A DNA stretch of 64,000 nucleotides from Haliotis rubra (GCF_003918875.1 NW_025765481.1:1178001-1242000), one strand, 5' to 3'; positions 28,492-63,816 are shown, numbered from the stretch's first letter. The notes: a model not told the origin generated them from the sequence alone. A program made the numbers and translations.

Positions 28492-29586
28492 TTGACGGTC
28501 TATATCAATAAAGTGTGTCGTGTCAACAAAGGGACATCTCTCTCTTGATGTCCAACTTGATAAACCATCTACCACTAAAATCTTAATTGCATAAAGATTC
28601 CGATTTTCATATTAGACAATAACTAAGATCTTCGACTGTGCAAAGCTTGAATTAATAATTTACTGCACAGATGGTTACTTATTGAAGATCACTTATTCTA
28701 AAAAATGAGCTTTTTTTATGTGTAAAAAAGAAACGCTGTGCCTATATTAGGCGCTAGCAATTTCTTTACTGCTACAATGGTAGTTTCACCCCTGGAGAGA
28801 ACGCAAACATCAAATGGCTGACCTAATTTTACTTCGGCTTTCTGTGTTTGAAAGTCGTGGTTTCTGCGAAGATCCAGGATAGTATTCATCTTGGTTAGGC
28901 GCGACTAACAGACTCGCATACTTCTTTGAGGCTTTCACGAGAGTTTCTACGGTCAAATAGTAAACTTTCAGGACCACACCCCCCACTACCCCCCTCTCTG
29001 GATCCGCCTATATACAGCCGACACCGAATGCCGACTTGTCTAGATTTAGCCTATATATTGCCACATCTGGCAACTTGATCTTCTAAGACATGTTATTTAC
29101 ATTTGTGCGAGAATCAACCGTTATACCTTTATAGTGATGACGATCTTTGTTATCAGTTATACGTCATTACCTCCCAGGTAAGGCTTATGAAGTTAACAAC
29201 CGATATCTCGCCTTGTTACGTCATCTCATATCAGCGTTACCTAACGCCATAGGCTACTTACGGTGGGTGGTTTAAAACGTTGGCCCTGACTTTGTAACTG
29301 CACAAATCGCACTGGGACACGGCAGGTGAGACCTTGTATTGTGTTGGTTTATTTTTGTCAATTAAATAGTAATTTTAAAAATATTATAAAACATGTGATA
29401 AACTGCGGTTAACTGTGGTCCTATGAAACACTCGGCTGTTCATTAACTTCTTTCAGTAGTATTTTAAAATGACGGATAAATTTGTTCTACGTTATGTGAA
29501 CTCTATTCCCTAAACGTGTAGAGATTTAAATTTGAGGGGTCTCACTTGTTGGTATATGCATTGGTTTGACTTTTTTTCGCGCACGC

Positions 29587-30022
29587 GGGGCGATGGGGTT
29601 TCCTAGTGGTAAAAGTGAGTGAGTGAGTGAGATGGGTTTTACGCCGCTTTTAGCAATATTCCAGCAATATCACGGCCGGGAACACCAGAAATGGGCTTCA
29701 CACATTGTGCCCATGTGGGGATTCGAACCCGGGTTTTCGGCGTGACGAGCGAACGCCTTAACCACTAGGCTTCCCCACCGCCCCTAAAGCGTTGAGTTGT
29801 AACATCGAAGACCATGCGTAAAAACCATACTCACTCACTCTTTGGCGCACGCAGTTCCTCTTCTGATAGTTAATCATTTTCTTCAGTGAGTGAGTGAGTA
29901 TAGTTTTACGACGCTTTCAGCAATATTCAACGCCGGGGGACACTAGAAATGGGCTTCATACATTGTACCCATGTGGGAAATCGAACCCGGGTCTTCGGCG
30001 TGAAGGGCAAACGCTTTAACCA
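29587..30022. mobile_element. Cluster of three SINE A copies (minus copy 29615-29785 nested in a plus copy; another minus copy 29886-30022)
   Basis: Consensus matches. The plus copy is split around the minus copy. Confidence 0.85.
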
Positions 30023-30410
30023 TAAAGTATATTCAAGCATCGAACAGTTTGATCGGTCACCGTTGAGATTTCCAGCGGTCTTGTTATACCTATCGCTAAA
30101 AACGTTATGTTGGCAATGAACAGTCAACCTGCAATAAACATGACTTTTAACGAGTTAAGGTATAGCATTTCCGATATATGTATAGTTTCTCTGTTAAACT
30201 AACGTTCGTCCCAAGGCGTCAATAACTGTTATCTTATCATGGTATATAAATAACGGTGAGTTCGTCAATAACGCCCACAATTTGTATACGGGTATGCAAA
30301 ATGTTTTAACATAAAATATATGTTTGTATTTAACGGTTGAAGTAACTATGCACGTTGTCTTCTTGAGTTCAGCAATAAAACACCATCAGCAACAAGTCGA
30401 CGTCACCGCC

Positions 30411-33400
30411 ATGGTTCCGTCAGTCAAGGTCATCGTGACGGCGCTGGTCCTCCTGTGTGTGATGATAGACGGAGTAAACACCATGTGTGAGTAAGCTATG
30501 TTCACAGAGAAGAGTCACTGGGTGTGTTTGTATGTACATGTACATTTACTTGGGCGTGTACCTTTAAGGTCATCTGTATGGTCCCGGTACACGAACCCGA
30601 GAAGATCCGGGTTAGAATTGATTATCAGTAGCCTATGCTTGTCGTTAGAGGCGACTAACGGGATCGGGTGGTCAGGCTCGCTGACTTGGTCGACACATGA
30701 CACTGTCTCCCAATTACGTAGAACGATGCTCATGATATTGATCAGTGGATTGCCTGGTCCAGACTCGATTACATAAACACCGCCGCCATATAGCTGGAAC
30801 ATTGCTGAGTGCGGCTTAAAACTAAACTCACTCACACACTCACCCAGTACCCGATCAGCTTATGGACGGTCGGTAGACGTATTAGTAACAAGCTAGCAAA
30901 AACAACAATAACAACAACCACAGTAACAATAACAACGATTAGAGAGAACAGCAATAACAACTAGAAAAACAACAACAATACTAACTATATGTATAACACA
31001 GCAACAACAGCGATAATAATGATAATAATATCATAAATAAACTATAAAGAGGATATTAGTATTTACTTGTCAATGTTACGTTTATCTCCCAGAGTGTCCT
31101 AAAATGTTACAGTAACTATTCCCATGTGGTTTTGTCAATACGCCTTCTGTTGCTGGAATTCGAATTTCGTTTTCAGCTAAACTGACTGTACACTGACTCA
31201 CAACCAACTCTTTTGTTCTCTCAGACTGTGACGTGGCCGTCAACACCGACATCGTCATCGCCATCCATGACAGTGCCTCAACAATGCAGTCGTTTTGGGG
31301 AGGGATTGCTATCTCCCCTGGTTTAGCCAACTTCCTGCGTTCTTTCGTCACCCTATTCGACTTATCCAGGGTCCGGATCTCTTTGGTGGCATACGGGACA
31401 ACGGTACGTGAGCTCTGCGCCTTCACCAACGTGTCGTCAACGCTGCAGACGGCGTTACGGTGGAGACCGGAGTTCGGAACAGCGAGAACTTACGACGCCG
31501 TACGCTTCATCAGCAACCTCTTCAGAGCACATGCCCGCCCCAACACGGCCAAACTCGCCATATTCCTCACCAACGTAGCATCTGGGAACTATGTAGCTAC
31601 AGTGTCCGAGAGCATCCAGTTGAGGGCGGAGGAAGTTGCTATCGTCGGCGTGGCCTTCGGACAGAGTCCTGCCAGAGAGCTGGTGATGATGGCGGGAGGC
31701 AATTCCCTACAACTTATCTCCACAACATCGGACTTCCTTCTGATGCAGGAAAGCCCAAGGATCAAGAGGCTCATATGTTATCGTGAGTAGGACGTGGGGG
31801 CTGGACATAGTTTGTTGACCGTTGAGTACGAATCTAGGCGATGAAAACCAGCACGGTGGCGATGTTTACTGTCAGCAGCTTCTTTCAGTGCTTCGGGGGG
31901 CGGTGGGGGTAGCCTAATGGTTAAGGCGTCCGCTCGTCACTCTGAAGACCCGGGTTCGATTCCCCACATGAGCACAATGTGTGAAGCCCATTTCTGGTGT
32001 CCCCCGCCTTGCTATTGCTGGAATATTGCAAAAGCGGCGTAAAACTATACTCACTCACTCACTCAGAGCTTCGTCCTTTATGAATGCCAGAAAGTGTGGT
32101 CGTTGGTCCAAGTCCCAGGTCATTCCTTAATCTGTTTCCTCCTTTGTAAGCACCACCGCTGTGGTCGTGGTATTCACCAAAGGGGTAATTATCTGGGACC
32201 TGCATCAGCAAAGGCTTTTAACCTACGGGAAACTAAGATGCCCTTATTCATCTGGATTGATGTTCAATGCGGCGATAAACCCCTCACTCACTCGACATAG
32301 TCATATTAATCCGAAGCACTTATCAAAGCAATGAAATTTTATGCCTGTTTACTATCAGTAATATACATACATAACTGTCATGGCTTTCCACATATGCAAA
32401 TGGGTTCTGTGTGCCGTCTCCTCGTACATAGCCAATGTAGTGTATCCGTGAAGATTCGGGTTAGAATACTTGTCGTAAGAGGCGACTAAAATGGGATTGG
32501 GTGGTCAGGTTCGTTGACTTTTTTGACACGTGTCATCGTATCACAATTGATGTTGATCGCTGGATAGTCTGTTCCGGACTCGATTATTTACAGACCGCCA
32601 CCATATAGCTGGAATATTGCAGAGTTCCAACAACAAACCAACAGAACCTATGTAGTGAGTGCTAAACGTCTAGTGCAGGTTATGTGTATCTACAGTTATA
32701 AGCTTCATTTTACAGTGGCTCATGTGTACCGGCAAATACTGGCGAGACGACCTACAACCACTCTCCCTACCACAATCATAACCACTACCACCGCAACTAC
32801 CACTACCACTACTGCCACTACCACTACGAGAAGCCTACAATTCATTAACCTGTGCTGCTCCACTACAATGGCTGCTCCACTCAGTAAGTATTTTGTGGAT
32901 CGCTCAGGACAGCATTAACACCGACTAGTTCGGTTGTAGATCAGTTGTTTTACGCCAAACGGACTATAGTAAAGAAACGGTCAAAGAACGGTCAAGAGGA
33001 AACGAAACCAGGATCCTCTGATTTCCAGATTCATCCAGTCACGATATGGCTGAAATATTGCCGATGTGACGTCAACTTTTAACTCACTCACTTCAGATTC
33101 ATCCATGATCCTGGCCTTTAGGCGGTAAGGTAGCCCAGTGGATAAAGCGACACAAAAGACCCGGGTTCGATATCTAATGTGGAGAATGTATTAGTACCCG
33201 ACGTGATGTTGTTGCAATGTTGCTAAAAGTGGCGTTGAACCAGACTCACTCACGTTGGGATGTCCACTCACAGGAATTTTATGCGCCTAGAAAGCTGAAA
33301 TAATGTTTAAATCTACGTTACACTTTACTAACTTACTCATGGATAAGGCTCTGCGCTCTACGGAAAGCTTTTAGGGCCATTTGTTTCTTGCTATTTTAAG

Positions 33401-34648
33401 GAATGTAAGTTGAAAATGCAAGATATAAAATTGAAATTTCAGGTTATTTTCTTGGTAATGTCAACTTGTTATGTATCTGGAAATTTCCACCTAGATTTCA
33501 TCATCGTATCTTGAACTTTCAGTAGAAATAATTATAAAGTTAAACGGCCCTAAAAGGCTTTAGTTTAGCTAGACGACCTGGGTAGAGTAATTCGGTGCTT
33601 GTCAACAGCGATTGACACAATGTCAGTGCACAGATATATTTAAGCACTGGTCCGACTGTGGCTTCGTTGTATGAGGTTCTGCAATTTAGTTAGTGGAGTG
33701 TGTCCTCGACCAGTGGAAGGATCCTGTGAGGGCGGATTCATATGTCAAATTCGGTATGATTGAATTGTCTACATTTGTACCAATTCTCGCTCAGCACGAC
33801 TTTAACCTGGACGGAGTGGTGGGGTAGCCTAGAGGTTAAAGCTTTCGCTCGTCACGCCGAAGACCCGGGTTCGATTCCCCACATGGGTACGATGTGTGAA
33901 GCCCATTTCTGGTGTCCCCGCCGTGATATTGCTGGAATGTTGCAAAACGCGGCGTAAAACTAAACACACTCAAACTGGACCCACGTTGGATCGCTTTGGC
34001 ATTATTTATTAAATAAATATTAATTTAATCCATTGTACCTTTACAGTTGCAGCTGTCGTGTCGGACATCATGTTGGTGTTGGACCACTCGGACAGTACCA
34101 GACGTTTCTCGGGGCTGACAGCCAGCTGGGCGTCCGCCCTTTCCATTTTTGCCACTGCATTTGTGAATCGCCTCGTCACCGCTGACGGAACCTGCACCGT
34201 CGGTCTCACAACGTTTTCCGATACGGCGACAACACGTCAACAACTAACAACTAACAAGACCATCTTCACAGACACCGTCGACATGGTCGCAGCCAACAAC
34301 ACCATCCCCTTCGGCGGATCCAACATCGCTGCCGCCATCACCCTGGCAACCAATGAACTTATCAACAACGGCAATGCAGGAGCTCAGAAAGTGATTTACA
34401 TCGTTGTGGACGGGTCTCCGAATGATGCTGCTACCCTGGAAACTGCTGCCCAAACGACCGCCGCTGCTGGCGTCACCGTGTACGCGGTCTCTTTGCGGAC
34501 GCTCAGTGGCCTGGCGGTGACACAGGCGACTCTCAACACCATCGCTCAGGATCCTGTTCGGACATTCGCTAATCGGTTGGACTCGGATCTTGTAGACTTG
34601 ACAACAAATCTTCCTTCCGGAATCTGTCCCAATGCATTCACTCCTTAG
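30411..34648 (+). CDS. Secreted double-vWA protein with Thr-rich linker, gene 1 (exons 30411-30486, 31225-31782, 32716-32883, 34047/34053-34648)
   Basis: Signal peptide MVPSVKVIVTALVLLCVMIDGVNT. vWA1 (TDIVIAIHDSAS...AKLAIFLTN). Thr-rich exon. vWA2 with MIDAS DHSDS...VVDG. All introns phase 1. Likely 5'UTR exon ending 29324 and AATAAA at 35611. Confidence 0.88.
30594..30843 (+). mobile_element. SINE family B (tRNA-less, structured 5' end)
   Basis: (g/a)acccg.gaagatccgggttagaat...gcttgtcgt.agaggcgactaacgggatc...gctggaa.attgctgagtgcggc.taaaactaaactcactc. Confidence 0.9.
30900..31040. repeat. Degenerate (AAC/AAT)n microsatellite
   Basis: Runs of aacaacaataacaac and gataataat. Confidence 0.75.
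31896..32064 (+). mobile_element. SINE family A
   Basis: Full consensus. TSD approximately tcag(t/a)gcttcg. Confidence 0.9.
33813..33971 (+). mobile_element. SINE family A
   Basis: Full consensus. Flanks aacctggac/aaactggac. Confidence 0.88.
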
Positions 34649-34840
34649 TAATGAAACAGGGAACGGTGTGCTTGTTATTAAGACCATCGGAGAAAAACGG
34701 TGTAGGGTTTATTTATTTCCCATAGAATTCCTCTACCCACTTCCCCACCAACGGATATTGATAGGTCAACAGTTTAAGATCATGTTGGTCCACATTTGTT
34801 GAAAAAACGATACGGATTACGTTTCTTGGATTACGATATA

Positions 34841-35225
34841 GTATTGATCATGATTACAGTATTGATCATGATTACAGTATTGATCAGGATTACAGTATTG
34901 ATCAGGATTACAGTATTGATCAGGATTACAGTATTGATCACGATTACAGTATTGATCATGATTACAGTATTGATCATGATTACAGTATTGATCATGATAA
35001 CAGTATTGATCATGATTACAGTATTGATCATGATAACAGTATTGAGCAGGATTAGAGTATTGATCAGGATTACAGTATTGATCATGATAACAGTATTGAT
35101 CATGATTACAGTGTTGATCATGGTTATTGTTGATCATGATTAAAGTATTGATCATGATTAAAGTATTGATCATGATTACAGTATTTACAGTATTGATCAT
35201 GATAACAGTATTGATCATGATTACA
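34841..35225. repeat. 18-bp minisatellite (gtattgatcatgattaca)n, about 21 units
   Basis: Directly visible. Produces the spurious MINTVI/HDQYCN repeat ORFs. Confidence 0.97.
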
Positions 35226-36548
35226 TTTCATAACCTTCACGGCACATAATGCCTAATATGGCCAGTTTGTAGACTCCATAATGAACATATATTTATCGGT
35301 AGTCTATCAGCTATGGCTTATGTTATTTATATATTTTTGTTTCAGTGTTTTGATGTATTCTTATTTGCTCATGGCTAATTGTAAGACATCATGTTTGAGC
35401 CTGGAAGGCAATGGTCTAATTTATTTTCATACTTGTGTTGATATGAATATTTATTTTCAATTAATCATCAGTGAAAACATGAACTTTTATTTATAGAAGG
35501 TGCATGCATTGTCTGTCATCAAGAAATGAGCTCTTGTCTGGAATACTGTTTATCGCATTCAATGTAATTGACTCAATGACTCCATATTTTTACATAATAC
35601 CATGATAACAAATAAATGCTTGATGATAGGTAAACATTATGCTTCTTTTTAAAGAGATGTTTACGGCAGCTTTGAACGAAGGAAGAGCATGAGTTCAGAT
35701 TACCAAAATGAACGTATCATCATTGAAATGTTTGTCTATACAAAATTTGTTGGTGATGTCGTCCACAGCGTGGTGAAAGCTTTGGTGAGTCAAGTCATGT
35801 CGAGTGAGTCGGTCGTGTTATTCAAAGAATGCTTGATGACAGGTTGAGTGCAACGGGTGTGTTGCTACATTCAAACGGGGAGGTGGGGCGGCCTTGTGTT
35901 AATAGCGTCCGCTCGTCACACCGTCAAGACCCGGTCTCGAATCACCACATGGGTGCAATCTGTGAAGCCATTTCTGGTGACTCCCGCCGTAATATTGCTG
36001 GAATAATGCAAAAAGCGGCGTTAAACAATGCTCATTCACTTCATTCAAACGGTACAGAAATGCCCAATAACGTTAAACATTAAAACGATAAAATTATAGA
36101 TATTCGAGCTCAGAAGGGCCATTGGTATTAGTTCATCAAAACCGTTCATCATAATGCGCATTTCGCCTATATGCACCAGGACAAAACCAAACCAAACCAA
36201 ACAGTTCGTTACATGCATGTTCGTTATAAACGTAGTCTACAGTAATATAGTCTTTTACGAAGTTGGGGATGCTCAAAAATATCTTTTATTGTAAACCAAA
36301 AGTCACCGTGTTCTTTAATCTGATTATTTGAAAAACATGATCGAATGGTATTCGATTCCCGGAAATTGCAAGACTATTCACTGCGTATTGACACGTACAA
36401 TTATCTTACTTTCATGTAAAATACTTTAATTTCATTGGTCAATGACGCTTTAACAAGTTTCCGTGTCACCCCTCCCAGGAGGGTGACAACTGGAAAATAT
36501 ATTACCCGCTGCCACGGTAACCGCCAAGCTCTCCGCCGAGAAGCTGAA

Positions 36549-37166: not shown

Positions 37167-37620
37167 GACCGCCTCCGAGGTCTACTGGATAATGCGTTTG
37201 CCAGAGAACGGAAAATCGGTGGTTCGATCCGTGGCCGCTTCATACCCAAACAAACGTTAAAAGATGGTTCAGGTTCTTACCCTGGCTGCTTTAATGGGTC
37301 AAAACAACGACTGATCAGCACGGAATCGTCATACAGTGTGTGAGCGGGGTATCCATATTCAACCGCGACAAGGTATCCTAGGCTAGCACTATAAAACTAG
37401 CATTNNNNNNNNNNNNNNNNNNNNNNNNNNNNNNNNNNNNNNNNNNNNNNNNNNNNNNNNNNNNNNNNNNNNNNNNNNNNNNNNNNNNNNNNNNNNNNNN
37501 NNNNNNNNNNNNNNNNNNNNNNNNNNNNNNNNNNNNNNNNNNNNNNNNNNNNNNNNNNNNNNNNNNNNNNNNNNNNNNNNNNNNNNNNNNNNNNNNNNNN
37601 TGTAAACTCCATCTCACCTC
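37167..37620 (+). mobile_element. Diverged SINE family C spanning the assembly gap
   Basis: gaccgcctccg head, ggttcgatcc, gctagcactataaa. catctcacctc tail after the gap. Confidence 0.7.
37405..37600. other. Assembly gap (196 N)
   Basis: Run of N. Confidence 1.
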
Positions 37621-38324
37621 ATTTCCTCAAACAAGAAAACATGTTGAGTCTAACACGATCACTTTGTAAATGCAGTCGCCTACAAAATTAACCTCATAGC
37701 TATGTCATAAGGTAAAAGGTCATCTGGACGTATTGGGAGGCTCATCATTATTCTGCATGGCTGAAGTTACTAGTTCACGAGTTCATGACTAGCACTACGT
37801 ATATTCTACCCCATAAAGATTTGCTGATAAGGGTGATGTGCAGGATTATCAGTGATACGCACAAGTCACATCAGTAACATATTTCGTACATGAATAAGAT
37901 TAAAAAAGGAGATATTCTCTTTATATTATAGGATTACATATTGGATTATATTTCTTTATTCACAGTAAGCAACAAAATGTTTTTCCTAAATAGAAAATAA
38001 CCATACAAGTAGTCTATATTTACTAAACGACAATGCAGTGTTCTAGTAAAGAGAAAGAAAATTGAAGAAATATTTGACTATCAGCTTTTTCTAGACGGAT
38101 AGTGGACTTAAATAACTACATTCAAAGAGATGAGATGTTTTCATAATTTAAAATTTTGGCGTCTTCGTTGCAAGATTCAAACTATCTACTTATACAAACG
38201 CTTATGAAATATTTCAAAGCGTCATCACTACACCAACATCAGCGTGCATATTATGTAGAGGTCACGCCTCTAGACTGTGATTGCCAATGTAATCATATTA
38301 ATCTCTTCTAATCAACATGAAACG

Positions 38325-38493
38325 ATTCTGTTCATGTTTACGCTCGATTTGCAATACTGGGGCAGCGCTGGATGCTTGACCGCAACGCTGTCTGATCTTG
38401 ACCCTTGGCTGTAGTCACTTGGCTATATTAGAAGGGACAGTGGACGTGTTGTCATTCCCGTCTATCTTCCTCTGAGTCAGCCGAGTGAAAAGT
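38325..38493 (+). promoter_or_regulatory. Conserved vWA-family promoter plus non-coding exon 1 (gene 2)
   Basis: tgtttacgctcgatttgca, gcgctggatg.ttgacc, gatcttgaccc and TATA-like ggctatattaga (38421). Homologous blocks precede genes 3, 4 and 5. Confidence 0.75.
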
Positions 38494-38763
38494 GTGTGTA
38501 TTTCATTCGTTTCGAGAACATAGTGCCTTTAAAGAATTTTAACACATTCAGTTTGTGTCTTTTTGTAAAACTACGCTATTTTCAACATGGTCGGTCTCGA
38601 TGTGATTACCGCCAAACGTTAACAATATTAGTTACATTTGAGTGTCATTAACATGTTGTTTACCAATTACGGACAGATCCTTCAATTTGGTGCCTGTTTC
38701 TTTGAAGATGTTTTACTTTTTTACCTTGCAGACATTCAACTATTGTTACCATCTTCAGGAAAT

Positions 38764-41700
38764 ATGGAGTTCCTGATGTCGTCTGCTCGCCTGTATCTCG
38801 TCTGCCTGGCCGTCTGTTTCTTGTTAGGAAGATACGCCTCAGCTTCACGTGAGTAAATCCATTGAAATGTTTCTCTGAAAAAGAATAATAACATGAAATT
38901 ACATGAAAAGGATAAACGTTGTATTATATGAACCCAGAGAATGAATTCAGAATGTATAATTGCACGAGACATATAAATTGAATGCAGAATATTTAATATG
39001 TCTTCGATCTATTATAGTTCAATTCTATATAAACTCGAGTGGGAAAAGATAATAATTATGTTTGTTCAGACCTAATTTTACATTTATATATATTTACACA
39101 AATGGTTGTATTACTCGGCTATCGGATAAAAGAAGTCTTGGCGCATTCAGATATGTGATCTACTATCTATATTCTGCATTGGTGGTTCACGTGTCCCTGT
39201 TTCATGTTGTATGTACTGATTACAAAACCGAACTACATGTATGTAATCTACACAAACCTCTGATCAACAAATTCAGTTAGATACAAACTAAGATTCCCAG
39301 ATGTACAACGTGCGATACTTTTCTGATTAACGAATGACCAGTCTCGAACAGAAGACAAAATGGCTGGGGAAATCTATAAATGGGCGAGTGAACATGAACA
39401 AGGTGTCTGTGTGGACATGTTAGATGCAGAGGATGCCGTTTTGTATGATAACATCCTGAAGACGAAGTACCCTAACGTACTTATGTATTATCACATATAT
39501 TGAACTGAGTGTAATTACACAGTGTGTTTTCGATTTCAGCGTGTTCAGTGCCAGTCAACACCGACATCGTGGTCGCCGTTGCTGACTCCAAAGCGACCAT
39601 GTATCACAGCTGGGGAGGAATAGTTCTCTCACCGGGGCTTGTCCATTTTCTCAAATCTTTCGTCACCCAGTGTGACTACAGCAAAGTCCGAATGTCCATC
39701 GTTTCAGTCAGCACCACTGTGAGACTCCTTGCACCTTTCACCAGCAACCCAAACGACCTTCAGCTAGCTATTCAGACTTGGAGACCACAATTTAAGGGAG
39801 CAAAAACCTTTCTGGCTCTGAGGTCCATCAGGTCCTACTTCAAGACAGACGCTCGTCCAAACGCCGCTCGTATTGCCATTGTCGTCACCCCACAGCAATC
39901 AGACAACTATTTCTCCACAGTGTCTGAGAGCCTTCTGCTGAGGGCGGATCACGTCGCCGTCATTGGTGTCGGCTTCGGCCGCTTCGCCCCGTCTCAAGAG
40001 CTGGCCGCAATGGCAGGAAGTCGTGATCGAATCTTGATAACGCCCAACGATTACTTTCTTATTTACTTTGTCAAACCAATCAAGCAACTTATTTGCAAAC
40101 GTGAGTACAACGATTATCAGATTGAAACATTAACAATAACGACACAAATCGAAGTACTTGTAAAGACATATAGCCGATAAAGACACGTCCATTTATTAAT
40201 TTATGTACATATTTTCTTTGACAGTGAGCCAGGTAATTCAGAAGAAGCTGACCACAGGTGTGTTTTTTACCCTATCAATTTTAAAGTTAATTAGGGAAAC
40301 CTTTGTTTCATGTATTGTTCGCGTTGTCGTTATGACATTTGTCATAGATAATAAGATGAGAAAAGACTGATCTCCAACCCTGATGTATGTGGTGTCAAGG
40401 TTTGGTTGGTTTTGTCTGTTGTTTTACGCCGAAATCAGCAATATTCCAGCTAAATGGAGGCGGTCTGTAGCCACGTGTGTAAATACGTGAGTCTAGACCA
40501 GACAATACAGTGACAAACAGCATGAGCATCGATATACACAACTGTGATACGAAGACATGTTTCAACCAAGTCAGAGAGCCTGACCACCTGATCCCGTGTG
40601 TCGCCTCTTACGGCAAGCATGGGTTACTGAAGACCAGTTTTAATCCGGATCTTCAGGGATCTGTGGCATCATGACTGAACTAACTATCTAATATGTCTGC
40701 AGCGTATGATATATTTTCATTTATGTATTTGTTTAAGAGATGAAACAACCTGTATTTATTCCTCAATTATTCCAATAATTTGCAGTTTCATTAACTACGT
40801 CTACCACGACAACAACTACTACTACTGCTACGACAACAACTACAACGCAAACAACTACGACACCAACAACTACAACGCAAACAACAACTACACCGACGAC
40901 AACAACTACAACGCCAATGACAACGGTGGTCAACGACGCAACGACTATGGGTGGTACGTATTAATTGATGGTGTCTTCCCGCGCGATGTTGTTGAAACAT
41001 AAAAAAAATCAATGTCATGTCAGTTTTAATAAGAATATTTCACTAATATATTAGGTATTATAGGGTAATGTTTCAACTATGTATCGTGACCTCTGATAGT
41101 CTAGACATTTCTAGCTTATACAGTCAGAAATGCTTTCCTTAACATGCATTTGGAGCACTTCGACTTAGTGAATAGGTTTAACATCAATGTACCAGATGTA
41201 TTTTCCAGTCAAATAGTTGATCATTGTTTCTTGCCATCAGATCGACAAGCAAGTAGATTCTGTGATTACACAATGTCATTTAGGAAGTGGTCAAATGTAG
41301 CATATGTTATATTTGGGATTACACATTCTCAGTGTAGTACTTTTAGTACAGATTCTAGAACTTTTGTTGGGTCGAGTCCCATCTGGAAGCAGTGGCGGCT
41401 GAGCAGGTTAGACGGCTGACTTTGTGTGCTTACGATCAGGTGCCTGACTCTGAGGGTGTGGGCTCGAATCCCGGATGGGATTCAACCCAACAAAAGGACT
41501 AGAATCTCTACTTTACTGAGGAAGTGTAATCCCAAATAAAACCTATGTTACAAGTAGATTCTGATCCATAACCACCCAGAAGGCGGGGGAGGTCTTTACG
41601 TCACACTACATTTGGATTTTGTTTCTTATTTTTAGCTATTATGGTGGACATTATGGTGTTATTGGACCACTCCGCCAGTACAACCCGTTTCCAAGGTCTA

Positions 41701-44650: not shown

Positions 44651-44706
44651 GTGTCGCAGTGCACATGCACGCTTATGATGCATAATGCTACACCTGTGCA
44701 TTAGTA

Positions 44707-49583: not shown

Positions 49584-51376
49584 ATGGACTTCCTGATGTC
49601 GTCTGCTCGTCTGCGTCTCGTCTGCCTTGGCGTCATTTTAGTATTTGGTGGATATGCCTCAGCTTCTCGTGAGTAATATCTACTGAAACATGTCTTTTCG
49701 TCAAAAACTTTGATAATGTCTAGGTACGTATGGTATATGTTACTAAAAGTAACACCATGCTGATGTGTTCTTTTATATGCGGACTCCGTATATAATTATG
49801 TACATGACAAGTCTGTGTTGATGCTCAGCAAACAGATTCCATCTTAGGAGTAGAGATCACCAAGAAATTGTGTGTTTAAGTATATATCTCATCATGACCT
49901 TGAATCTAGAATGTTATTTTGATCATATACAAACATTGTTCTGAGGTTTTTCTGCACAATGGCTTCAGGCAGTACATCTGACAAGTATGTCATTAAATGA
50001 ACTGGTCGTTTTCAGAATGTTCAGTGCCAATCGATACCGACATCGTAATTGCTGTCGTCGACTCCAAAGCGACCATGTATCACAGCTGGGGAGGAATCGT
50101 GCTCTCACCGGGGCTTGTCCACTTTCTCAAGACCTTCGTCTCTCATTGCGATTACAGCAAAGTCCGACTGTCCATCGTCGCAGTCAGCAACACCGTCAGA
50201 CTCCTTGCACCTTTCACCAGCAACCCAAACGACCTTCAGTTAGCTATTCAGACATGGAGACCACAATTTAAGGGAGCAAGAACCTTTCTGGCTCTCAGGT
50301 CCATCAGGTCCTACTTCAAGACAGACGGTCGTCCAAACGCCGCTCGTATCGTCATTGTCGTCACCCCACAGCAATCAGACAACTATTTCTCCACAGTGTC
50401 CGAGAGCCTGCTGCTGAGGGCGGATCACGTCTCCATCATTGGCGTCGGTTACGGTCACTACGCCCCTTCTCAAGAATTGTTGGCCATGACAGGAAATCGT
50501 TATCGAGTCTTTCTAACGGGCAATAGTTACTACCTTGTGTATTCTGTGAATCCAGTCAAGCAACTTATTTGTACATGTAAGTAGAACAGAAGAATATATC
50601 TTCCATTGTTCACTTAAGTAGTACTACGTAGTAGTATTTTCAATCTCTATTTGTCCTTGAGAAATGTGCTCTTGTTAATTATCACATGTTTATGCCTGCT
50701 ATTTGTATTGACAGTGAGCCAGGCCTTCAAGGATGCTTTGACGACAGGTAAGACTTTTGAGGATACAACTCTCTAATTTCAGTATTTGTAAGGTTGCTTC
50801 TCAAGTCGCACTCAGCAATTTTCTATCTATACTTGTCTGTAAATTTTCAAGTTTGGACCAGATAATTCAGTGATTGGCATCATCAGGATCGATGTTTGCA
50901 CGTACGATACAATGACCTGCATGAACCAAGTGAGCCTCACGACTCAACTCTACCCATTAGTCTCATGGGTTACTGAAGATCAATTCCAACCAGGATCTTC
51001 ACGGGTTACCACTATACCTGAACCTTTTTCATCACGTAACACGGAACCGAAATGTTATTAAGTTGAGGTTTCAAGTTAAGTATGCTATATAAAATGTTCA
51101 TGGTGTCAAATATCTTTATAAACACTAAGCTGGACCCCTGGTGTTAATGGCCCAGGGACAAGCTTTCTCAAACAAAGACCGTTTATGTCCAACACCTGAA
51201 ACAGATGTATACACTGTAATGGAATATATTTATTGAAAAGGAATACACAAGCTGTCTTCCTTTGTACTTAAGTTCCTACCTGTGTTTCAGCTGCTACGAC
51301 GACAACGACATCAACAACAACTACGACTACAGTTTCGACTACGGATCTCGGCCTTATGACAACGATGAATAATTAG
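49584..51376 (+). CDS. Secreted single-vWA protein with short Thr tail, gene 3 (exons 49584-49668, 50016-50576, 50715-50747, 51291-51376)
   Basis: Signal peptide MDFLMSSARLRLVCLGVILVFGGYASA. 561-nt vWA exon. 33-nt microexon LSQAFKDALTT. Last exon AATTTTTSTTTTTTVSTTDLGLMTTMNN*. Promoter and exon 1 at ~49098-49272. Confidence 0.9.
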
Positions 51377-52337
51377 ATAAATACCCTGGGTGTATTATTG
51401 ATACACGGATCATTTTACCCTTTGCAAAGTATAGTTTATTCATTGTATATTACGATGTGTCTTTTATTAGTTATCCCAGATGTTCTCTCACCCATGTACG
51501 AAAGGTTTGACATTCTAATGGTTTCCTCCATCTTGGTACACAAATGTTATATTCTATAACTTGTTTAGCCATGATGCCTACCTGTGAGTGTCCAATCTTG
51601 CACTATATAAAATTGCTTGTTTGATAAATCATCCAACTGACTCCTTGTTTTTGTCTTCTGAATTTATATATTTTACTGCACCAACACATTTCTCAGAGAC
51701 ATCTGACTGCATCACACTGTGCACATTATGGTCACAATAACCATGTTCACTATTTACTACCCATTTTGACAATATTCCAACAATACACAGCTTTTAGCAA
51801 CATTCCAGCACGACAGGGGACACAAAGATATGAACTTCCTAAATTGTACCTATGTTGGGAATCGAACCCGGGCTAACCGAGAGACGAGAGAATCTTTTAA
51901 CCACTAGATCTACCAACCGCCACTATGTAATAGTGATGCATATACACTATTTTACTGCATAAGATGTACTCGAGAACAACAGTGGCCAATGAATGGGCTT
52001 TCAGAGGTTAGTAGTCTGGATTATCAGGGTTGGGGAGAGGGTTCATAATTCCGATATTATTCACTAGAAGACAAATGTACAGAATAATGTTGTTCAGAAA
52101 AATATCTTTCCAGGACAGGCGCGCAAACAGACCAATTTCTCTTGTCCGAAGCATTTACACATCTAATTTAGATGTTATATCCAAAGGTTTTTGTTTAGCC
52201 TTGTCTATTTATTAACACGAGATATACTACTCAAAGTTTGACAAGAATCACCCCCTTTTTATATTAATCTTATCTTACATGGCAATGCAGGTCTCTCAAT
52301 CACTGAAAACCAGAATGTTTAAAAAATGTACATATCT

Positions 52338-53170
52338 ATATCTCTCAAACAAAACGCTTTCTCAGTTAACATCTGTTGTACATACCCTAGCCTATGTCTG
52401 TCACTTGTGTACTTTGTTGTAAGATGAATCGTGTAATTATCTGGAGAGGGCTTTTCTAAGTTGGATAACTTGTGCCCAGTCCTTTTCTTGAATGAATAAA
52501 ATATGTTTAAAATAAAACATCACCCCCTTTAAAGGGTCATACGTCGATTGTGTACATATGTTGAAAAAGACAAAGACAGTATTTCGCAAAAACATGTTTT
52601 ATGAACAAAAGTGCGTTGCCATGACATTGTGCCACACAATGACAACAAACAGCATTTGACCAGTCAGATCAAAATGAAAGTATCTCACCAAAACCGATTC
52701 AGATCTCATCTGGTCACAACCAGTCACCATCGTCTCATACTCGTCGTCAATGGAAGATTGTTCCACTCTTCAGTAAGAGCGCAGTTCCCGTAAAGTTGCC
52801 GGAAGGACAGAGCGCCGGATGACGTCGATCTGCACCTCGTTCCACATGTATAAGATATGGTACATTTCTTGTGACCGGGATGGCCAGTCCATGCGGCCAA
52901 TGGTGTTCTGGTCTGCTCTAAGTTAGCAACAACAACTCTGGTACGATAACAGCGTGCGTTAGCGTCCATGAGGATGAAGTCCGGTTTCATTGCACCAGCA
53001 TTCGATCGCCCACATCCAGAATGTTAGCCTGTAGTGCCCCACTGCAGGACATGGAGATCGGTACACTCAGCTCTTCTGATCCAACCATGACTGAGCCCTC
53101 TCAAAAGCGGTCATGTTCGACATCTTTAGGAATCCGGAAATCCGTATTCTTGTCTTCGCCATATTCATTT
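52338..53170 (-). mobile_element. Highly decayed Tc1/mariner relic
   Basis: ORF 52724-52990 PDFILMDANARCYRTRVV...LTEEWNNLP resembles the Tc1 catalytic C-terminus. TIR-like tatatctctcaaacaaaacgc at ~52338. Confidence 0.65.
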
Positions 53171-53225
53171 CATAAGGCGCAAAATGATCCTTATTGTGAG
53201 TTGGATACATATTGTTATGAATGTG

Positions 53226-53442
53226 GACCCGTGAAGATCCGGATTAGAATTGGTCGTCAGTAACCCATGCTTGTTAGAGGCGACTAGCGGGATCGGGTGG
53301 TCAGGCTCGCTGACTTGGTTGGGCAGATAAATGCTCATGCTGTTGATCAGTGGATTGTCTGGTCTAGACTCGATTATTTACAGACCGCCTCCATATAGCT
53401 TGAATGCTGCTGAGTGCGGCGTAAAACTACACTCACTCACTC
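53226..53442 (+). mobile_element. SINE family B
   Basis: Starts gacccgtgaagatcc, internal deletion, tail actcactcactc. Confidence 0.88.
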
Positions 53443-53949
53443 ATTATGAAGGGAAAGTCGTTTTCAATCGCGAACATCTAAGGAATGTGAAACAAAACGA
53501 TTGTCTTGCAATTACACACCCTGAGACGCGATCCCTATGTATTCATTACCTATGCTTGTTGGGAAATTTGACCAAAAGGGAACAGGCAATGAAACAATAT
53601 GGTTACCTTAACCAAACAAAGTAAACAGTTGATCATTAATGGATTAAGCTCCAGTAATTGATCCAGAAACGTAATTAAAACCGAAAATCACGTTCTTCCT
53701 TTGTGTCTAAAAAAGTCGTCTGCTCTAACATTAAGGAAATTTAACAACGTAATAACACCTGTGAAGACCACAAAAATATTGGCGGAAATTGTTACCTCAA
53801 ATCGGGTGTTTATTCAATATGATTTATAGGAGGGTGAAACTTGGTTAACGTTGCATGTCCTTTTGTAAATGTCAATACTGATTAACCTGTCACAAGAAAC
53901 GTAAGTCCACGAATGGAGGCCCCTGATCAGTGCTTGGTGTGACCGCCGT

Positions 53950-54113: not shown

Positions 54114-54124
54114 ACCGCCGTGTG

Positions 54125-54734: not shown

Positions 54735-54990
54735 CCATTCTACAAGTATGTCCAGTTTATACATTTTCTAATACAATAATGGGTAACCAAACCATCCTTC
54801 TACAAGTATGACCAGACACCAGAGAGTTTATATCTTGTCTGATACAAAAGCGGGTAACAAAAGCACCCTTCCACAAGCATTGTCCACTTACCAGACAGTT
54901 TGTACGATGTCTGCTACAATACTGGTGACCAACCCATTGTTCCATTTGTCTGGACATACCAGTGGAACTATGGGTTGGTTACCCACTACC
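54735..54990. repeat. Degenerate copies of the 72-bp satellite
   Basis: ggtaaccaaaccatccttctacaagtatgaccagacaccagagagtttatatcttgtctgataca matches the 60420-61180 array unit. Confidence 0.75.
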
Positions 54991-56086: not shown

Positions 56087-57594
56087 CTAGTTATCCATTG
56101 TTGTCATAACGTCGATCCTCGTGGTCGAAGCTGTAGTCGTAGTTGTTGTTGAAGTCGTTGTCTTAGCAGATGCAGCTGAAGAATAAGTAGGAACGTATGA
56201 ACACAAGAAATAGCTTTTGTATTCCTTTTTCAACAGATATATTCCATCACATGGTATGCATCAATCTCATGCGTTATAGAAACGGACTTTGTTTGAGAAA
56301 ACTAGTCAATACCTGAGATTAAACTTCGTTTTCACAGGGATATCTGAAAAACTCAAAATAACAGTAGTTCCAGACATTTTAAAGGGAAAGAAAAATGCAA
56401 GTTAACAAGGAAGCAATTCTTTAGGATAACAAGAGATCGAATGCAACAAGTTCCATTGCTAACTTTAAAGCCTGTAGTAATCACGAAATTCATAAATGTA
56501 AAGATTCATTCCTCTGTTATACTTACTTATGCAAATAAGATGCTTGACTGGATTCACAGAATACACAAGGTAGTAATCATTGCCCGTTAGAAAAACTCGA
56601 TAACGATTTCCTGTCATGGCCAACAACTCTTGAGAAGGGGCGTAGTGACCGTAACCGACGCCAATGATGGAGACGTGATCCGCCCTCAGCAGCAGGCTCT
56701 CGGACACTGTGGAGAAATAGTTGTCTGATTGCTGTGGGGTGACGACAATGACGATACGAGCGGCGTTTGGACGACCGTCTGTCTTGAAGTAGGACCTGAT
56801 GGACCTGAGAGCCAGAAAGGTTCTTGCTCCCAGGAATTCCGGTCTCCATGTCTGAATAGCTAACTGAAGGTCGTTTGGGTTGCTGGTGAAAGGTGCAAGG
56901 ACTCTGACGGTGTTGCTGACTGCGACGATGGACAGTCGGACTTTGCTGTAGTCGCACTGGGAGACGAAGGTCTTGAGAAAGTGGACAAGCCCCGGGGACA
57001 GAACAACTCCTCCCCAACTGTGATACATGGTCGCTTTGGAGTCAACGACAGCAATTACAATGTCGGTGTCGACTGGCACTGAACATTCTGAAAACATATA
57101 TAAAGAAAGGATATAACAACATTTTTTGGTACCTTTTTCTTCAGTGAACTTAATCGCTGTATAGTACTTTTAACAAATGTTTAAGCGTACAACTTAGTAG
57201 AGGGCATGTGTGATTGCACTTTGCACATTAAATGCCAAAATCTGAACTACAACCATCCTCCTATATGCTTGTACATGATCCAAATACTATTATGCCCTTT
57301 CCAGGTACAACTGCATTATGAGACAGGTAAAACTGTAAGATAGACTGGCATCTGTATGTATAAGAACTCACATTATCTACGTCCATTTGTCGTACGTTGA
57401 ACATGTGTCGTAGGCTTAACTTGTATAAGACATTTATCCTTTCACAAAGACACTTTATATTGTTAACCCTTTGCTTCAAGAAGGTAGAGTTGTAATCGAC
57501 GTTACTCACGTGAAGCTGAGGCGTATCCTGCCAACACGAAACAGACGGCCAGGCAAACGAGGTGCAGACGAACAGACGACATCAGAAACTCCAT
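56087..57594 (-). CDS. Secreted single-vWA protein, gene 4 (exons 57594-57510, 57087-56527, 56175-56087)
   Basis: Signal exon MEFLMSSVRLHLVCLAVCFVLAGYASA. 561-nt vWA exon. Last exon TASAKTTTSTTTTTTASTTRIDVMTTMDN*. Promoter at ~58180-58370. Confidence 0.9.
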
Positions 57595-57685
57595 CTAAAT
57601 GTTAAACCAAATGACTAAACGTTTATGAATAATGGATATGAAGAGATGACAACGAAACATATATCTAAAATTCAAACCGATAATA

Positions 57686-57934
57686 GACCCATGAATTTAA
57701 GGGTTGGAATATTGGCCGTCAGTAACCCTGCTTGTCGTAAGAGGCGACTAACGGGTTCGGGTGGTCAGGCTCACTGATTTGGTTGACAAATGTCATCGGT
57801 TCCCAATTGCGCAGATCGATGCTCATGCTGTTGATCACCGGTTTGTCTGGTCCAGGATCGATTATTTACAGACCGCCGCCATATAGCTGGAATATTGCTG
57901 AGTGCGGCGAAAAACTTAACTCACTCACTCACTC
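57686..57934 (+). mobile_element. SINE family B in intron 1 of gene 4
   Basis: Full consensus. TSD aaccga(t/c)aata. Absent from the homologous intron of gene 5. Confidence 0.9.
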
Positions 57935-59164: not shown

Positions 59165-59650
59165 CATTGTATCAGACTGTTAGGCGGGACATCCATGTAG
59201 AAGGATGGGTTGGTTATCCATAGAGAAATAGTAGAGAAATGGATGTGTTGGTTACCCACTATTGTATCAGACAAGATATAAGCTCTCTGGTGTCTGGACA
59301 ATACTAGTGGAAGGATGGATTGGTTACTCACTATTGTATCAGACAAGATATAAACTGTCTGGTGTCTGGACAATACTAGTGGAAGGATGGATTGGTTACT
59401 CACTATTGTATCAGACAAGATATAAGCTGTCTGGTGTCTGGACAATACTAGTGGAAGGATGGATTGGTTACTCACTATTGTATCAGACAAGATATAAGCT
59501 GTCTGGTGTCTGGACAATACTAGTGGAAGGATGGATTGGTTACTTACTATTGTATCAAACAAGATATAAGCTCTCTGGTCTTTGAGTGAGTGGGTAACCG
59601 ACCCATCTTGTCTGATACAATAGAGGGTAACTAATACATCCTTCCACTAA
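59165..59650 (+). repeat. 72-bp tandem satellite array
   Basis: Unit tatcagacaagatataagctgtctggtgtctggacaatactagtggaaggatggattggttactcactattg. About 5 near-perfect units give the 24-aa repeat ORFs. Confidence 0.95.
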
Positions 59651-60419
59651 CCCATTTATGCATAGGGTCTAAGATTTTCACAATTTTTTTGTGAGTTTGT
59701 TTCATTTGGCAAGCAATGAAAGGAATGAGGTGTCATTTCACCAGTAAATGAATTTGTCCATACTTTTTTTTACACTGCAAAAGTTCGTCCCATAACAATA
59801 TGCAGATGAGTGAACTTAAATTAGGTAATTTATTAGGCTTAGGTGGGGGAGATCAACCTATGAATGCACCTATCTAACACTGCAAAATAACCCTGTGTCC
59901 ATGGTTTTCATATGTGAGGAACAGCAGAGGACTTAGGGACACATTCATCAACTGTTATGTTTGGTTCATCAGAAAACATTTTATGGGACCAAGAATGCCC
60001 ATGAAATGTTCAGGTTTCAATTTGGTAATACGCATAGTTTCATATAAAAGCCAGTTTAGTTTTATTTCATAAAAACTTTCAAATGGAAAACGGAAGATTT
60101 GAGTCAAGCCTAATATTTAAGATCACCTATCTGCATATTGTCCCATTTATGGGACGGTACTTTGGCGGAAAATTGAGTATGGAAAAATGCAAACCATATT
60201 CATTTTATTTTTCTGTTTGAACAACGAAAGTTTAAAACACATTTTAATGAACTTACATAGTTAAAATAGGGACCAATAAAAATCATCTTACCTCACACTT
60301 CACCGAACTGGCAGGTAAGGTCTACAAGTAATGTAAATATTTCAACCACTAAACAATTTACTCAGCTTCATTCACGTCTTCACTGCAATTTTCAACAATA
60401 GGAGAGGAATGCTTTTTTG

Positions 60420-61182
60420 ACACATCCTTCCACTGGTATGTACACGTCAGACAGTTTATATATTGTCTGATACAATAGTGGGTAACCAACCCATCCTTCT
60501 ACTAGTATGTCCAGACACCAGACAGCTTTTATCTTGTGTGATACAATAGCGAATAACCAACCCATTCTAACACTAGAATTGTCCAGACACCAGGCAGTTT
60601 ATATCTTGTGTGATACAATAGCGAGTAACCAACCCATTCTAACACTAGAATTGTCCAGACACTAGGCAGTTTATATTGTCTAACCAGACTAGACACCAGG
60701 CAGTTTATATCTTGTGTGATACAATAGTGAGTAACCAACCCATTCTAACACTAGAATTGTCCAGACACCAGGCAGTTTATATCTTGTGTGATACAATAGT
60801 GAGTAACCAACCCATTGTAACACTAGAATTGTCCAGACACCAGGCAGTTTCTTATCTTGTCTGAACCCATTTACACTAGTATTGTCTAGACACCAGACAG
60901 TCTTGTGTGATACAATAGTAGGTAACCAACCCATCCTTTCACTTGTATGTCCAGACACCAGACAGCTTATATCATGTGTGATACAATAGCGAGTAACCAA
61001 CCCATCTTTCCATTAGTATGCCAGACACCAGACAGTCTTGTCTGATACAATAGCGAGTAACCAACCCATCCTTCCACTTGTATGTCCAGACACCAGACAG
61101 CTTATATCTTGTCTGATACAATAGCGAGTAACCAACCCATCTTTCCATTAGTATGCCAGACACCAGCTCATATATTGTCTGA
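60420..61182 (-). repeat. 72-bp satellite array in opposite orientation (~11 units with length variants)
   Basis: Reverse complement of the 59165-59650 unit. Confidence 0.95.
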
Positions 61183-62315
61183 AACATTGAGCATGAAATA
61201 TTCTCCTATCAAAATATTATATCAATTTAGTCTGATGATAAACCCACCAACTCACCCTTCAACAGGCAGAATTAGCTTTACAACAGTGTATATCATGTAT
61301 CATATATCACATTAACTCTTTAATATGGTAAAAGAAATCTTTTCATTTTTATGTAATAATACAATAACAGTTTCCTTTCATCACTCAGTACTGTTGCATT
61401 TCGTTTGTGACTACCGATTTCTCATGGGCGAGAATGTGGTTGTTGACAATAAACCTAGAGTCGTCCAACGTGTACACGTCTCAGTGAACATCAATCTAAA
61501 ACAAACGTCAAGTGTAACGTCGTATATTACTCTTGGTGGTTTATATACAAAAAACATACTTGACGTACAACACAGTTTGGAGATCAAAGCCTTTAACTAT
61601 GTACACATATGTGAAACATTTCTATGCCTCATAGCCGTGCTACAACAACGTACACCTGCATGTTATGTAGACTAAATTCCCCCAGACAGAATGTATACAT
61701 ATACACTTACACACATTAAACAATAATCAAAGATCTCTCCCTGTTTCATTACGAGTGTGAAACATTTGTGAATCGTATCTCTCACAACACAACAGTGTAC
61801 ACCCCACCTGCATGTTATGTAGGATTTATACCTCACGGCAGTGTTTCTCATGTTAATTATATTATTCTACACTAATCAACATGAAATGACACCGTTCATG
61901 TTTACGCTCGATTTACAATATTGAGGAAGCGCTTGATATTTGACCCAGGTCCTGACCCTGAGCACTGGCGACTTGGCTATATTAGACGGAGAAGTGGAAG
62001 CATTGTCATTCCTGAGTCTGCATTGAGTCAACAGAGTGAAAACTGTGAGTTTCATGACTGTTATTACTATTTTATGACGTTTCTTAGTTAATGTATTTTC
62101 AGTAAATTGAAAATGTCAGTGACGTCTCGAATATCTGCCGGGTCAGGCTCGATAAAATTTGTGATGAAAATTGTATAACGTGATAAACTACAAATTGAAA
62201 AGTTGAGTTCATTTTTAGTTTCATTTAGATCGGTTTGAATTTTAGATATATGTTTCGTTTTCATATCTGCATATCCATTATTCATAAACGTCTAGTCATT
62301 TGGTTTACCATTTAG

Positions 62316-63816
62316 ATGGAGTTTCTGATGTCGTCTGTTCGTCTGCACCTCGTTTGCCTGGCCGTCTGTTTCGTGTTGGCAGGATACGCCTCAGCTTCAC
62401 GTGAGTAACGTCGATTACAACTCTACCTTCTTGAAGCAAAGGGTTAACAATAAATAGTGTTTTGTGAAAGGATAAATGTCATCTTATACAAGTTAAGCCT
62501 ACGACACATATTAAACCTATTATAAATGGACATAGACAATGTGAGTTCTTATACATACAGATGCCAGTCTATCTTACAGTTTTACCAGTCTACTAATGAG
62601 GTTGTCCCTGGAAAAGGCATAATAGTATTTGGATCATATGCAAGCATATAGGAGGATGGTTGTAGTTCCGATTTTGGCATTTAGACGTGTGTTCAAATAT
62701 CACACGTCTAATGTAGGTGTAATCCTACATGCCGTCTACTAAGATGTACGTTTATACATTTGTTAAAAGTACTATACAACGATTAAGTTCATTTAACAAA
62801 ATTGTACATGGAAATGTTGCTATATTCGTTGATGTTTTCAGAATGTTCAGTGCCAGTGGACACCGACATCGTGATTGCCGTCGTTGACTCCAAGGCGACA
62901 AGGTATCACAGTTGGGGAGGAGTCGTTTTGTCACCGGGGCTTGTCCACTTTCTCAAAACCTTCGTATCTCAGTGCGACTACAGCAAAGTCCGACTGTCCA
63001 TCGTCGCAGTCAGCAACACCGTCAGAGTCCTTGCACCTTTCACCAGCAACCCAAACGACCTTCAGTTAGCTATTCAGACATGGAGACCGGAATTCCTGGG
63101 AGCAAGAACCTTTCTGGCTCTCAGGTCCATCAGGTCCTCCTTCAAGACAGACGGTCGTCCAAATGCCGCTCGTATCGTCATTGTCGTCACCCCACAGCAA
63201 TCAGACAACTATTTCTCCACAGTGTCTGAGAGCCTGCTGCTGGGGGCGGATCACGTCTCCATCATTGGCGTCGGTTACGGTCACTACGCCCCTTCTCAAG
63301 AATTGTTGGCCATGACAGGAAATCGTTATCGAGTTTTTCTAACGGGCAATGATTACTACCTTGTTTACTCTGTGAATCCAGTCAAACATCTTATTTGCAT
63401 AAGTAAGTATAACAGAGGAATGAATCTTTGTGCTTATGAATTTCGTGATTACTACAGGCTTTAAAGGTATCAGTGGAACTATTTTCCTAAATAAATGCGT
63501 CCTTGTTAACTTGCGTTTTTCTTTACCTAAAACTGTATCGGAAAAATGTTATTTTTAGTTTTTCAGATATCTCTATGAAACGAAGTTTAATCTTAGATAT
63601 TAACTAGTTGTCTCCGACTACGTCTATAACGCATGGCATTGATGCATCCAATGTAATGGAATATATTTGTTGAAAAGGAATACAAAAGCTATGCTCCTGT
63701 TTTCATACGTTCCTACTTATTCTTCAGCTGTGTCTGCTAAGACAACGACTTCAACAACAACTACGACTACAGCTTCGACTACGGGGATCGACGTTATGAC
63801 AACGATGGATAACTAG
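62316..63816 (+). CDS. Secreted single-vWA protein, gene 5 (exons 62316-62400, 62842-63402, 63728-63816)
   Basis: Inverted near-duplicate of gene 4: same signal exon, 561-nt vWA exon, last exon TVSAKTTTSTTTTTTASTTGIDVMTTMDN*. Promoter at ~61885-62044. Confidence 0.9.

Follow-up and report, generated by a model that had tools for sequence, protein, structure and literature searches.

An old gastropod family of two-domain vWA proteins and its truncated, tandemly copied members in the abalone Haliotis rubra

A 64,000-nucleotide (nt) stretch of the genome of the blacklip abalone, Haliotis rubra (GCF_003918875.1 NW_025765481.1:1178001-1242000; contig C591:1,178,001-1,242,000 in our numbering, and called the window here) carries a row of small genes that join a signal-like peptide to one or two von Willebrand factor type A (vWA) domains and to threonine (Thr)-rich segments. 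It raises the question of whether such a row is an invention of this lineage, part of some larger gene, or a local expansion of an older family. An original prediction made from the window had described an expanding, lineage-specific cluster of five genes for secreted proteins in long and short forms. We examined the window together with the following 29 kb, and found eight genes. The explanation towards which we lean, with little better than even confidence, is that an old gastropod family of two-vWA matrix proteins was truncated and tandemly amplified in H. rubra, giving secreted modules that bind and cross-link matrix or mucus.

A genome-wide search with the exon for the first vWA domain (vWA1) returned eight vWA1-type exons in one row, all on C591, and exons of the second type (vWA2) occurred only twice in the genome, both on the same contig. 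The row is made up of eight tandem paralogues, of which one is inverted and the other seven lie on the plus strand. All are intact, and none lacks a start codon, signal-like peptide exon or stop of its own. The division into separate small genes with an N-terminal signal-like peptide and a vWA domain, in long and short forms, therefore stands; the number five does not, since the window end cuts the cluster and three further short-type genes lie just beyond it. The only other clearly related vWA exon in the genome (G000:C2170:536291-536848; E 4.7e-17) has 26-27% identity to vWA1 and vWA2, and may belong to a more distant paralogue of the family.

Exon borders were set from reading frames, conservation between paralogues and GT/AG rules, and the five models in the window are free of internal stops (467, 462, 243, 244 and 244 amino acids (aa) for genes 1 to 5, respectively). 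As predicted, each vWA domain occupies a single exon, and every modelled intron is of the GT-AG type and in phase 1. Both long genes, also as predicted, consist of a signal peptide exon, vWA1, a Thr linker exon of exactly 168 nt (56 aa) and vWA2. Gene 1 begins with an ATG and signal-like peptide at 30411-30486 (plus strand, phase-1 donor), followed by a vWA1 exon that appears deficient in the metal ion-dependent adhesion site (MIDAS; 31225-31782, PF00092 E 1.4e-10), an exon for a helix extension and Thr-rich linker (32716-32883, AG/GT borders, phase 1 to phase 1) and a vWA2 exon with a DxSxS motif that ends in the stop (34047-34648, PF00092 E 2.5e-17). Upstream of this vWA1, only the ATG at 30411 is accompanied by both a hydrophobic stretch and a GT donor in phase 1, and the peptide of exon 1 agrees with the N-termini of the H. 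rufescens (P0003) and H. cracherodii (P0152) orthologues. The cluster had earlier been taken to start at 29270, where neither an ATG nor a hydrophobic stretch nor a candidate donor came up; the coding sequence of gene 1 runs from 30411. Gene 2, also on the plus strand, has its signal-like peptide at 38764-38848 (phase-1 donor; 83% identity by tblastn with the gene 5 peptide), an apparently MIDAS-deficient vWA1 at 39540-40100 (PF00092 E 3.2e-11), a Thr-rich linker of 64% Thr in the open frame and with short tandem repeats at 40786-40953, and a vWA2 with DxSxS and then the stop at 41636-42210 (PF00092 E 1.9e-11). The vWA2 domains of the two genes share 41% identity.

The short genes have a signal peptide exon, vWA1 and a short Thr tail ending in a stop, the arrangement that had been proposed for genes 3 to 5 and that our models confirm. 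In gene 3 (plus strand) these exons lie at 49584-49668, where an AG immediately precedes the ATG, at 50016-50576 (PF00092 E 2.1e-10; 100% identity to the H. rubra RefSeq entry LOC124270586) and at 51291-51376, the last corresponding by homology to the 5' portion of the linker exon in gene 2. Gene 4 (56087-57594) is on the minus strand, with exons at 57594-57510, 57087-56527 and 56175-56087, and gene 5 (62316-63816) is on the plus strand, with exons at 62316-62400, 62842-63402 and 63728-63816; the two form an inverted duplicate pair with 88% identity over 1.8 kb. The earlier end at 63816 is the last base of the gene 5 stop codon (63814-63816). Beyond the window end are gene 6 (L019:7135-8652, 244 aa), gene 7 (L020:5319-6849, 248 aa) and gene 8, a short-type gene of 459 aa with exons at L021:982-1063, 1521-2081 and 3153-3889. 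The first exons encode a hydrophobic core, which in genes 2 to 5 is followed by an Ala-x-Ala-type small-residue site just before the first vWA1 cysteine, and the products would accordingly be secreted by way of signal-like peptides.

All seven vWA exons of the window exceed the PF00092 gathering score (37.9-64.1 bits, the cut-off being 23.8; E 1e-9 to 2.5e-17) and cover about 130-166 of the 174 profile positions. No other Pfam domain was found in these seven exons, the scan having covered the vWA exons and not the signal or Thr-rich exons. The alignments show that vWA2 retains DxSxS and Asp-Gly, with Ser at the usual Thr position. The first MIDAS Asp of vWA1 is replaced by His in gene 1 and by Ala or Val in genes 2 to 8; the last Ser of DxSxS is Ala in genes 2 to 8, and the later Asp is Asn or Pro (Asn in gene 1). 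By its residues, then, vWA1 reads as a MIDAS-deficient domain. Many genuine vWA domains are likewise MIDAS-deficient, and the deficiency is compatible with membership of the vWA superfamily. The AlphaFold model of the H. rufescens orthologue P0003 (predicted local distance difference test score, pLDDT, 77) contains two alternating beta/alpha, Rossmann-like domains, and its single-domain Foldseek matches include the collagen-binding A3 domain of von Willebrand factor (vWF), integrin I domains and collagen VI N5, with target-normalised template modelling (TM) scores of 0.73-0.82. A third vWA1 cysteine (39540-40100 and paralogues, residue 73 of the models) is present in genes 2 to 8 and in H. rufescens LOC124152266, and is not found in gene 1 or the limpet homologues. 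It makes the number of cysteines in the mature short forms odd, so that one of them is possibly free for intermolecular disulfide bonds.

How old are these genes? With vWA1 of gene 2 as query, HMMER was run exhaustively over 1.84 billion representative proteins and gave only 310 matches at E<=1e-3, five of them below 1e-30; the members of the family matched with E values from 1e-49 to 1e-27. Orthologues of 429 aa occur in H. rufescens (LOC124152278, P0003) and H. cracherodii (XP_071106879, P0152), and proteins of 414-426 aa with two vWA stretches each in Patella vulgata (LOC126810474), Gigantopelta aegis (LOC121380093) and Lottia gigantea (LOTGIDRAFT_156327). More distant two-vWA proteins of ∼400-430 aa are found in other gastropods, cephalopods and one pearl oyster. 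Gene 1 shares 84% identity in vWA1 and 76% in vWA2 with H. rufescens P0003, and vWA1 of gene 2 has 83% identity to a second H. rufescens protein, LOC124152266 (P0002), whose model ends by reading into the intron after vWA1. An alignment with the five species has a signal-like N-terminus, a vWA1 closed by a pair of N- and C-terminal cysteines, a linker rich in Ser, Thr and Pro, DxSxS and Asp-Gly in vWA2, and Cys-Pro at the C-terminus. Across the family the first Asp of vWA1 is replaced by Gly, His, Ala or Val, and the later Asp by Asn or Pro except in Lottia. Genes 1 and 2 have this full gastropod two-vWA plan (∼415-470 aa), and genes 3 to 8, being truncated, only its first half. Since other abalones, two limpets (Patella and Lottia) and a vent snail (Gigantopelta) share the architecture, the long form represents an old gastropod family, and the view of it as lineage-specific was wrong. 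In the five named relatives we saw only single long-form proteins per species; the truncated copies, six in all, and the mucin-tailed copy came to light in H. rubra only, in a search that did not cover the genomes of other abalones. In the literature that we searched, no paper names any of these loci or the Lottia identifier, and the two-vWA gastropod family is unstudied.

The short forms have a more recent origin. In a maximum-likelihood tree of vWA1 the gene 1 type is sister to the gene 2 type, and within the latter gene 2, the H. rufescens protein and a clade of genes 3 to 8 (support 100/99) form an unresolved trichotomy. Short-form Thr tails and the linker exon of gene 2 are homologous and have a Thr-Thr-Met motif in common near the exon end. 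The splice donor that follows this motif in gene 2 is gone in genes 3 to 8, where the frame meets a stop 2-9 codons further on. Relics of vWA2 were not found near any short form, even at E<=20. The copied unit is ∼8 kb long and includes ∼600 bp upstream of the ATG as well as arrays of a 70-72-bp minisatellite, which lie between successive short-form genes (54753-54919, 59241-61186, L019:4314-6360 and L020:2168-2720); the longest array is ∼2 kb, with copies 96-98% alike, and such arrays may promote unequal crossing-over. Pairs of short-form vWA1 exons differ by 0.10-0.21 synonymous substitutions per site (dS) and have nonsynonymous to synonymous ratios (dN/dS) of 0.05-0.35 (Nei-Gojobori, 186 codons), with 91-98% amino-acid identity among the copies, and these exons are under purifying selection. 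What fits best is a single truncation, in which the linker donor and the vWA2 exon were lost, followed by tandem copying under purifying selection. The truncated ∼8-kb unit would have been copied six times after it branched from the gene 2 type, and gene 8 would have regrown its Thr exon into a mucin-like domain of 245 aa. The original prediction of an expanding cluster is borne out for the short forms, which are monophyletic and, at this dS, the product of a recent tandem expansion. Its reference to birth-and-death evolution holds for one half only: with eight of eight copies intact, birth is visible in the tandem copies and death is not.

In P0001, the RefSeq model of gene 3, vWA1 and the Thr tail are separated by 11 additional residues, which come from a 33-nt exon (50715-50747, plus strand, AG/GTAAGA, phase 1 to phase 1). 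Genes 2, 3 and 8 have retained this cassette together with its frame and splice sites, the gene 2 candidate being an in-frame exon at 40225-40257 (plus strand, AG...GT), and it is deleted in genes 4 to 7, whose second introns measure only 325-352 bp. We think that it is genuinely coding, because the linker exon of the gene 1 type starts with a similar helix-extension segment; in gene 1 and its orthologues this segment opens the linker exon, and in the P0003 model it continues the last vWA1 helix. At 56 aa, the gene 1 linker of H. rubra (32716-32883) is longer than that in the models for H. rufescens and H. cracherodii (∼23 aa); the reason is either a Thr run that grows and shrinks fast between species or another donor in those models. 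Gene 8 has signal and vWA1 exons like those of the other short forms, and a Thr exon of 737 nt that includes 4.2 copies of a 75-nt repeat (25-aa repeats) and encodes its mucin-like tail, so that short-form tails span 27-245 aa. The Thr runs are likely to be heavily O-glycosylated.

Which known proteins could such genes resemble in their work? The mention of byssus in the original prediction was a good lead, for the best solved relative is PTMP1, proximal thread matrix protein 1 of the Mytilus byssus (PDB 4cn8/4cn9/4cnb). It is the best PDB sequence match (gene 3 vWA1, E 2.6e-8; gene 1 vWA2, E 3.6e-5) and also the best Foldseek match of the P0003 model, with both domains aligned (E 1.8e-21). 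PTMP1 is built from two vWA domains; collagens of both mussels and mammals are among its ligands, and it is believed to cross-link matrix (PMC4754843). The likeness concerns the long forms only, each a small chain of ∼45-50 kDa that is essentially two tandem vWA domains, and it is one of architecture and not of demonstrable orthology. By analogy, the abalone proteins probably do a PTMP1-like kind of job. Differences are also clear. Suhre et al. in 2014 reportedly described the PTMP1 domains as joined by a short two-strand linker; the abalone linker, instead of being short and structured, is 56 aa long and Thr-rich. The domain orientation of PTMP1 is not reproduced, and abalone make no byssus. 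We know of no series of one-domain paralogues of PTMP1.

Other familiar systems offer partial comparisons. Matrilins and collagen VI share with the abalone proteins an extracellular vWA domain; the nearest clusters are automatically named 'matrilin-2-like' and 'collagen alpha(VI)-like', and collagen VI is among the fold matches. The abalone proteins are, however, far smaller, and are without EGF repeats, coiled coil or collagen triple helix. The Thr runs, which reach 64% Thr in the gene 2 linker frame, and the 25-aa tandem repeats of gene 8 recall the Pro/Thr/Ser-rich domains of mucins, but the abalone tails, at their 27-245 aa, are short. Gel-forming mucins polymerise via vWD, C8 and cystine-knot domains, not vWA.

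If an old matrix family truncated and amplified in this way is the right explanation, the products would be secreted, carry O-glycans on their Thr runs and bind or cross-link components of the extracellular matrix or mucus. Bivalent long forms would bridge two ligands in the way that two-vWA PTMP1 does with collagens. Like A1 and A3 of vWF, vWA1 would need no metal for binding, and vWA2 would bind through a metal ion. Monovalent short forms might coat or occupy the putative ligand of vWA1 without bridging it, and the odd, clade-specific vWA1 cysteine of genes 2 to 8 could permit disulfide linking. A bolder version, highly speculative and in our view improbable, would have these proteins tune the valency of an adhesive or protective mucus: long forms would cross-link it, the amplified monovalent forms with MIDAS-less vWA1 and mucin tail would compete with them for the same ligand or cap that ligand by disulfides, and the ratio of long to short forms would switch the secretion between glue and lubricant. 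Any adhesive or mucus role is speculative, and so is the originally predicted part of the short forms as partners or modulators of the long ones.

Several points weigh against the reading of the cluster as truncated and amplified matrix modules. The likeness to PTMP1 is remote (16% identity, TM 0.40-0.45, root-mean-square deviation ∼10 A), its sequence matches are partial (83-100 residues, E 2.6e-8 to 1e-3), and its rank among the folds may owe something to the scarcity of solved tandem two-vWA chains. The linker differs from that of PTMP1 and is predicted to be disordered (pLDDT <50 in the orthologue model). The signal-like peptides and the putative O-glycosylation are readings of the sequence. 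One supplement of a paper on Patella adhesive mucus contains no vWA type-A entry, a statement that extends to that supplement, and an adhesive-mucus role finds no direct support there. A search of sequencing runs with gene 3 (48900-51900) found no RNA run containing it, which is weak negative evidence on expression; the three matching runs, all from one sample, behave as whole-genome DNA, with contigs of ∼1.1-1.5 Gb in total, a depth of 1e5 on an interspersed repeat described below and no splice joints at exon borders. Finally, an H. rubra protein model was found only for gene 3 (LOC124270586), and this is N-terminally truncated. For genes 1 and 4 to 7 no H. rubra model was found; the word search was length-limited for genes 2 and 8, and low-complexity words swamped the 429-aa query. 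Of the eight genes, seven appear to be without protein models in the databases searched.

These last observations lend themselves to another explanation, that the short forms are transcriptionally silent partial duplicates, young pseudogenes as yet without disabling mutations, and that only the long forms matter. The missing RNA run for gene 3, the truncated state of the sole H. rubra model and the absence of any database protein of 102-325 aa matching genes 4 to 7 are all as this would have it. We nevertheless consider it unlikely, since all six short genes have an intact ATG, signal exon, splice sites and stop, and neutral decay would give a dN/dS of about 1, plus frameshifts or stops, where ratios of 0.05-0.35 were obtained at a dS of 0.10-0.21. 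In addition, the ∼600-bp upstream block was duplicated with each gene, and the RefSeq model of gene 3 includes the 33-nt cassette, which is not predictable from homology alone.

A further possibility is a role in the shell, with the proteins secreted by the mantle for biomineralisation like the vWA-bearing Pif and BMSP. The original prediction had listed shell matrix among the secretions in which vWA proteins recur, and vWA domains are indeed recurrent in the shell matrices of molluscs (PMC3374290, PMC6003135, PMC11291548). The identifier of the Lottia homologue (156327) is, however, absent from the 17 supplementary files of an in-depth Lottia shell proteome. Chitin-binding domains accompany vWA in the proteins of Pif and BMSP type, as well as in the vWA proteins mentioned by name in the text of a paper on the Haliotis laevigata shell proteome; we found no chitin-binding (peritrophin A) domain in the scanned vWA exons, and no acidic mineral-binding region. 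A shell-matrix role is thus unsupported and disfavoured, and we regard it as quite improbable. It is equally improbable that these are secreted immune or pathogen-binding factors whose expansion was driven by host-pathogen conflict. A recent tandem expansion of a secreted binding domain would suit such a function, and mucus is the first barrier against infection; set against this, vWA1 is strongly conserved among the copies (91-98% identity, dN/dS well below 1), without signs of diversifying selection, and recognition domains such as lectin or C1q are lacking. That the exons are parts of one or two far larger genes with many vWA domains, like those for collagen VI or BMSP, to which the many HMMER matches with multi-vWA proteins of 1000-6000 aa might point, is scarcely credible given the separate ATG, signal exon and in-frame stop of every unit, the inversion of gene 4, and the orthologues in three other abalone/limpet annotations, which are 414-429 aa long with the same ends.

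Some further features of the locus deserve mention. An assembly gap, a run of N at 37405-37600, is intergenic between genes 1 and 2, 2.76 kb past the gene 1 stop (34648), 1.16 kb ahead of the gene 2 ATG (38764) and upstream of the conserved upstream block of gene 2 (38245-38506). No exon, intron or reading frame touches the gap and hence no gene model relies on continuity across it; only the spacing of genes 1 and 2 depends on it. An AG stands directly ahead of the ATG, after a pyrimidine-rich stretch, in genes 3 to 8 (49581-49586, 57597-57592 on the minus strand, 62313-62318, L019:7132-7137), and 6 nt upstream of it in gene 2; an AG abutting the ATG suggests that an untranslated leader exon is spliced onto the start codon. 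A candidate leader or promoter lies in the conserved upstream block (38245-38506, 49018-49411, 58447-58044, 61804-62055). Some 200 bp past the gene 1 stop, an 18-bp tandem repeat of ∼22 copies (34840-35225) is possibly part of the 3' untranslated region.

The introns and spacers of the cluster contain a family of ∼250 bp resembling short interspersed elements (SINE-like; 30595-30840, 40417-40665, 44705-44958, 53226-53443, 57686-57934), and a second family is ∼165 bp long (27987-28158, 29616-29785, 31897-32062, 33818-33972, 35877-36040). The copy at 53100-53500 has a word depth of 1e5 in the whole-genome contigs, implying tens of thousands of genomic copies. Over the vWA1 exon the depth of these contigs is also 5-20 times that over the flanks, which is what a multi-copy exon should give. 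We considered whether this depth could reveal extra unassembled copies of the cluster genes, and rejected the idea: depth is not copy number, and the values fit ∼6-9 shared copies, bar two contigs that are ∼3 times deeper.

The answer to the question raised at the outset is that a gastropod family of matrix proteins, itself unstudied, has undergone a real, if rather ordinary, expansion. PTMP1, the nearest characterised relative, is a model for collagen-binding biomaterials. If the abalone genes are not expressed, they are a homology-annotated curiosity only; if they are expressed in the foot, they would be candidates for components of the attachment mucus of abalone. The cluster shows how a bivalent matrix protein can turn into a monovalent, mucin-tailed family through the loss of one splice donor and subsequent tandem copying.

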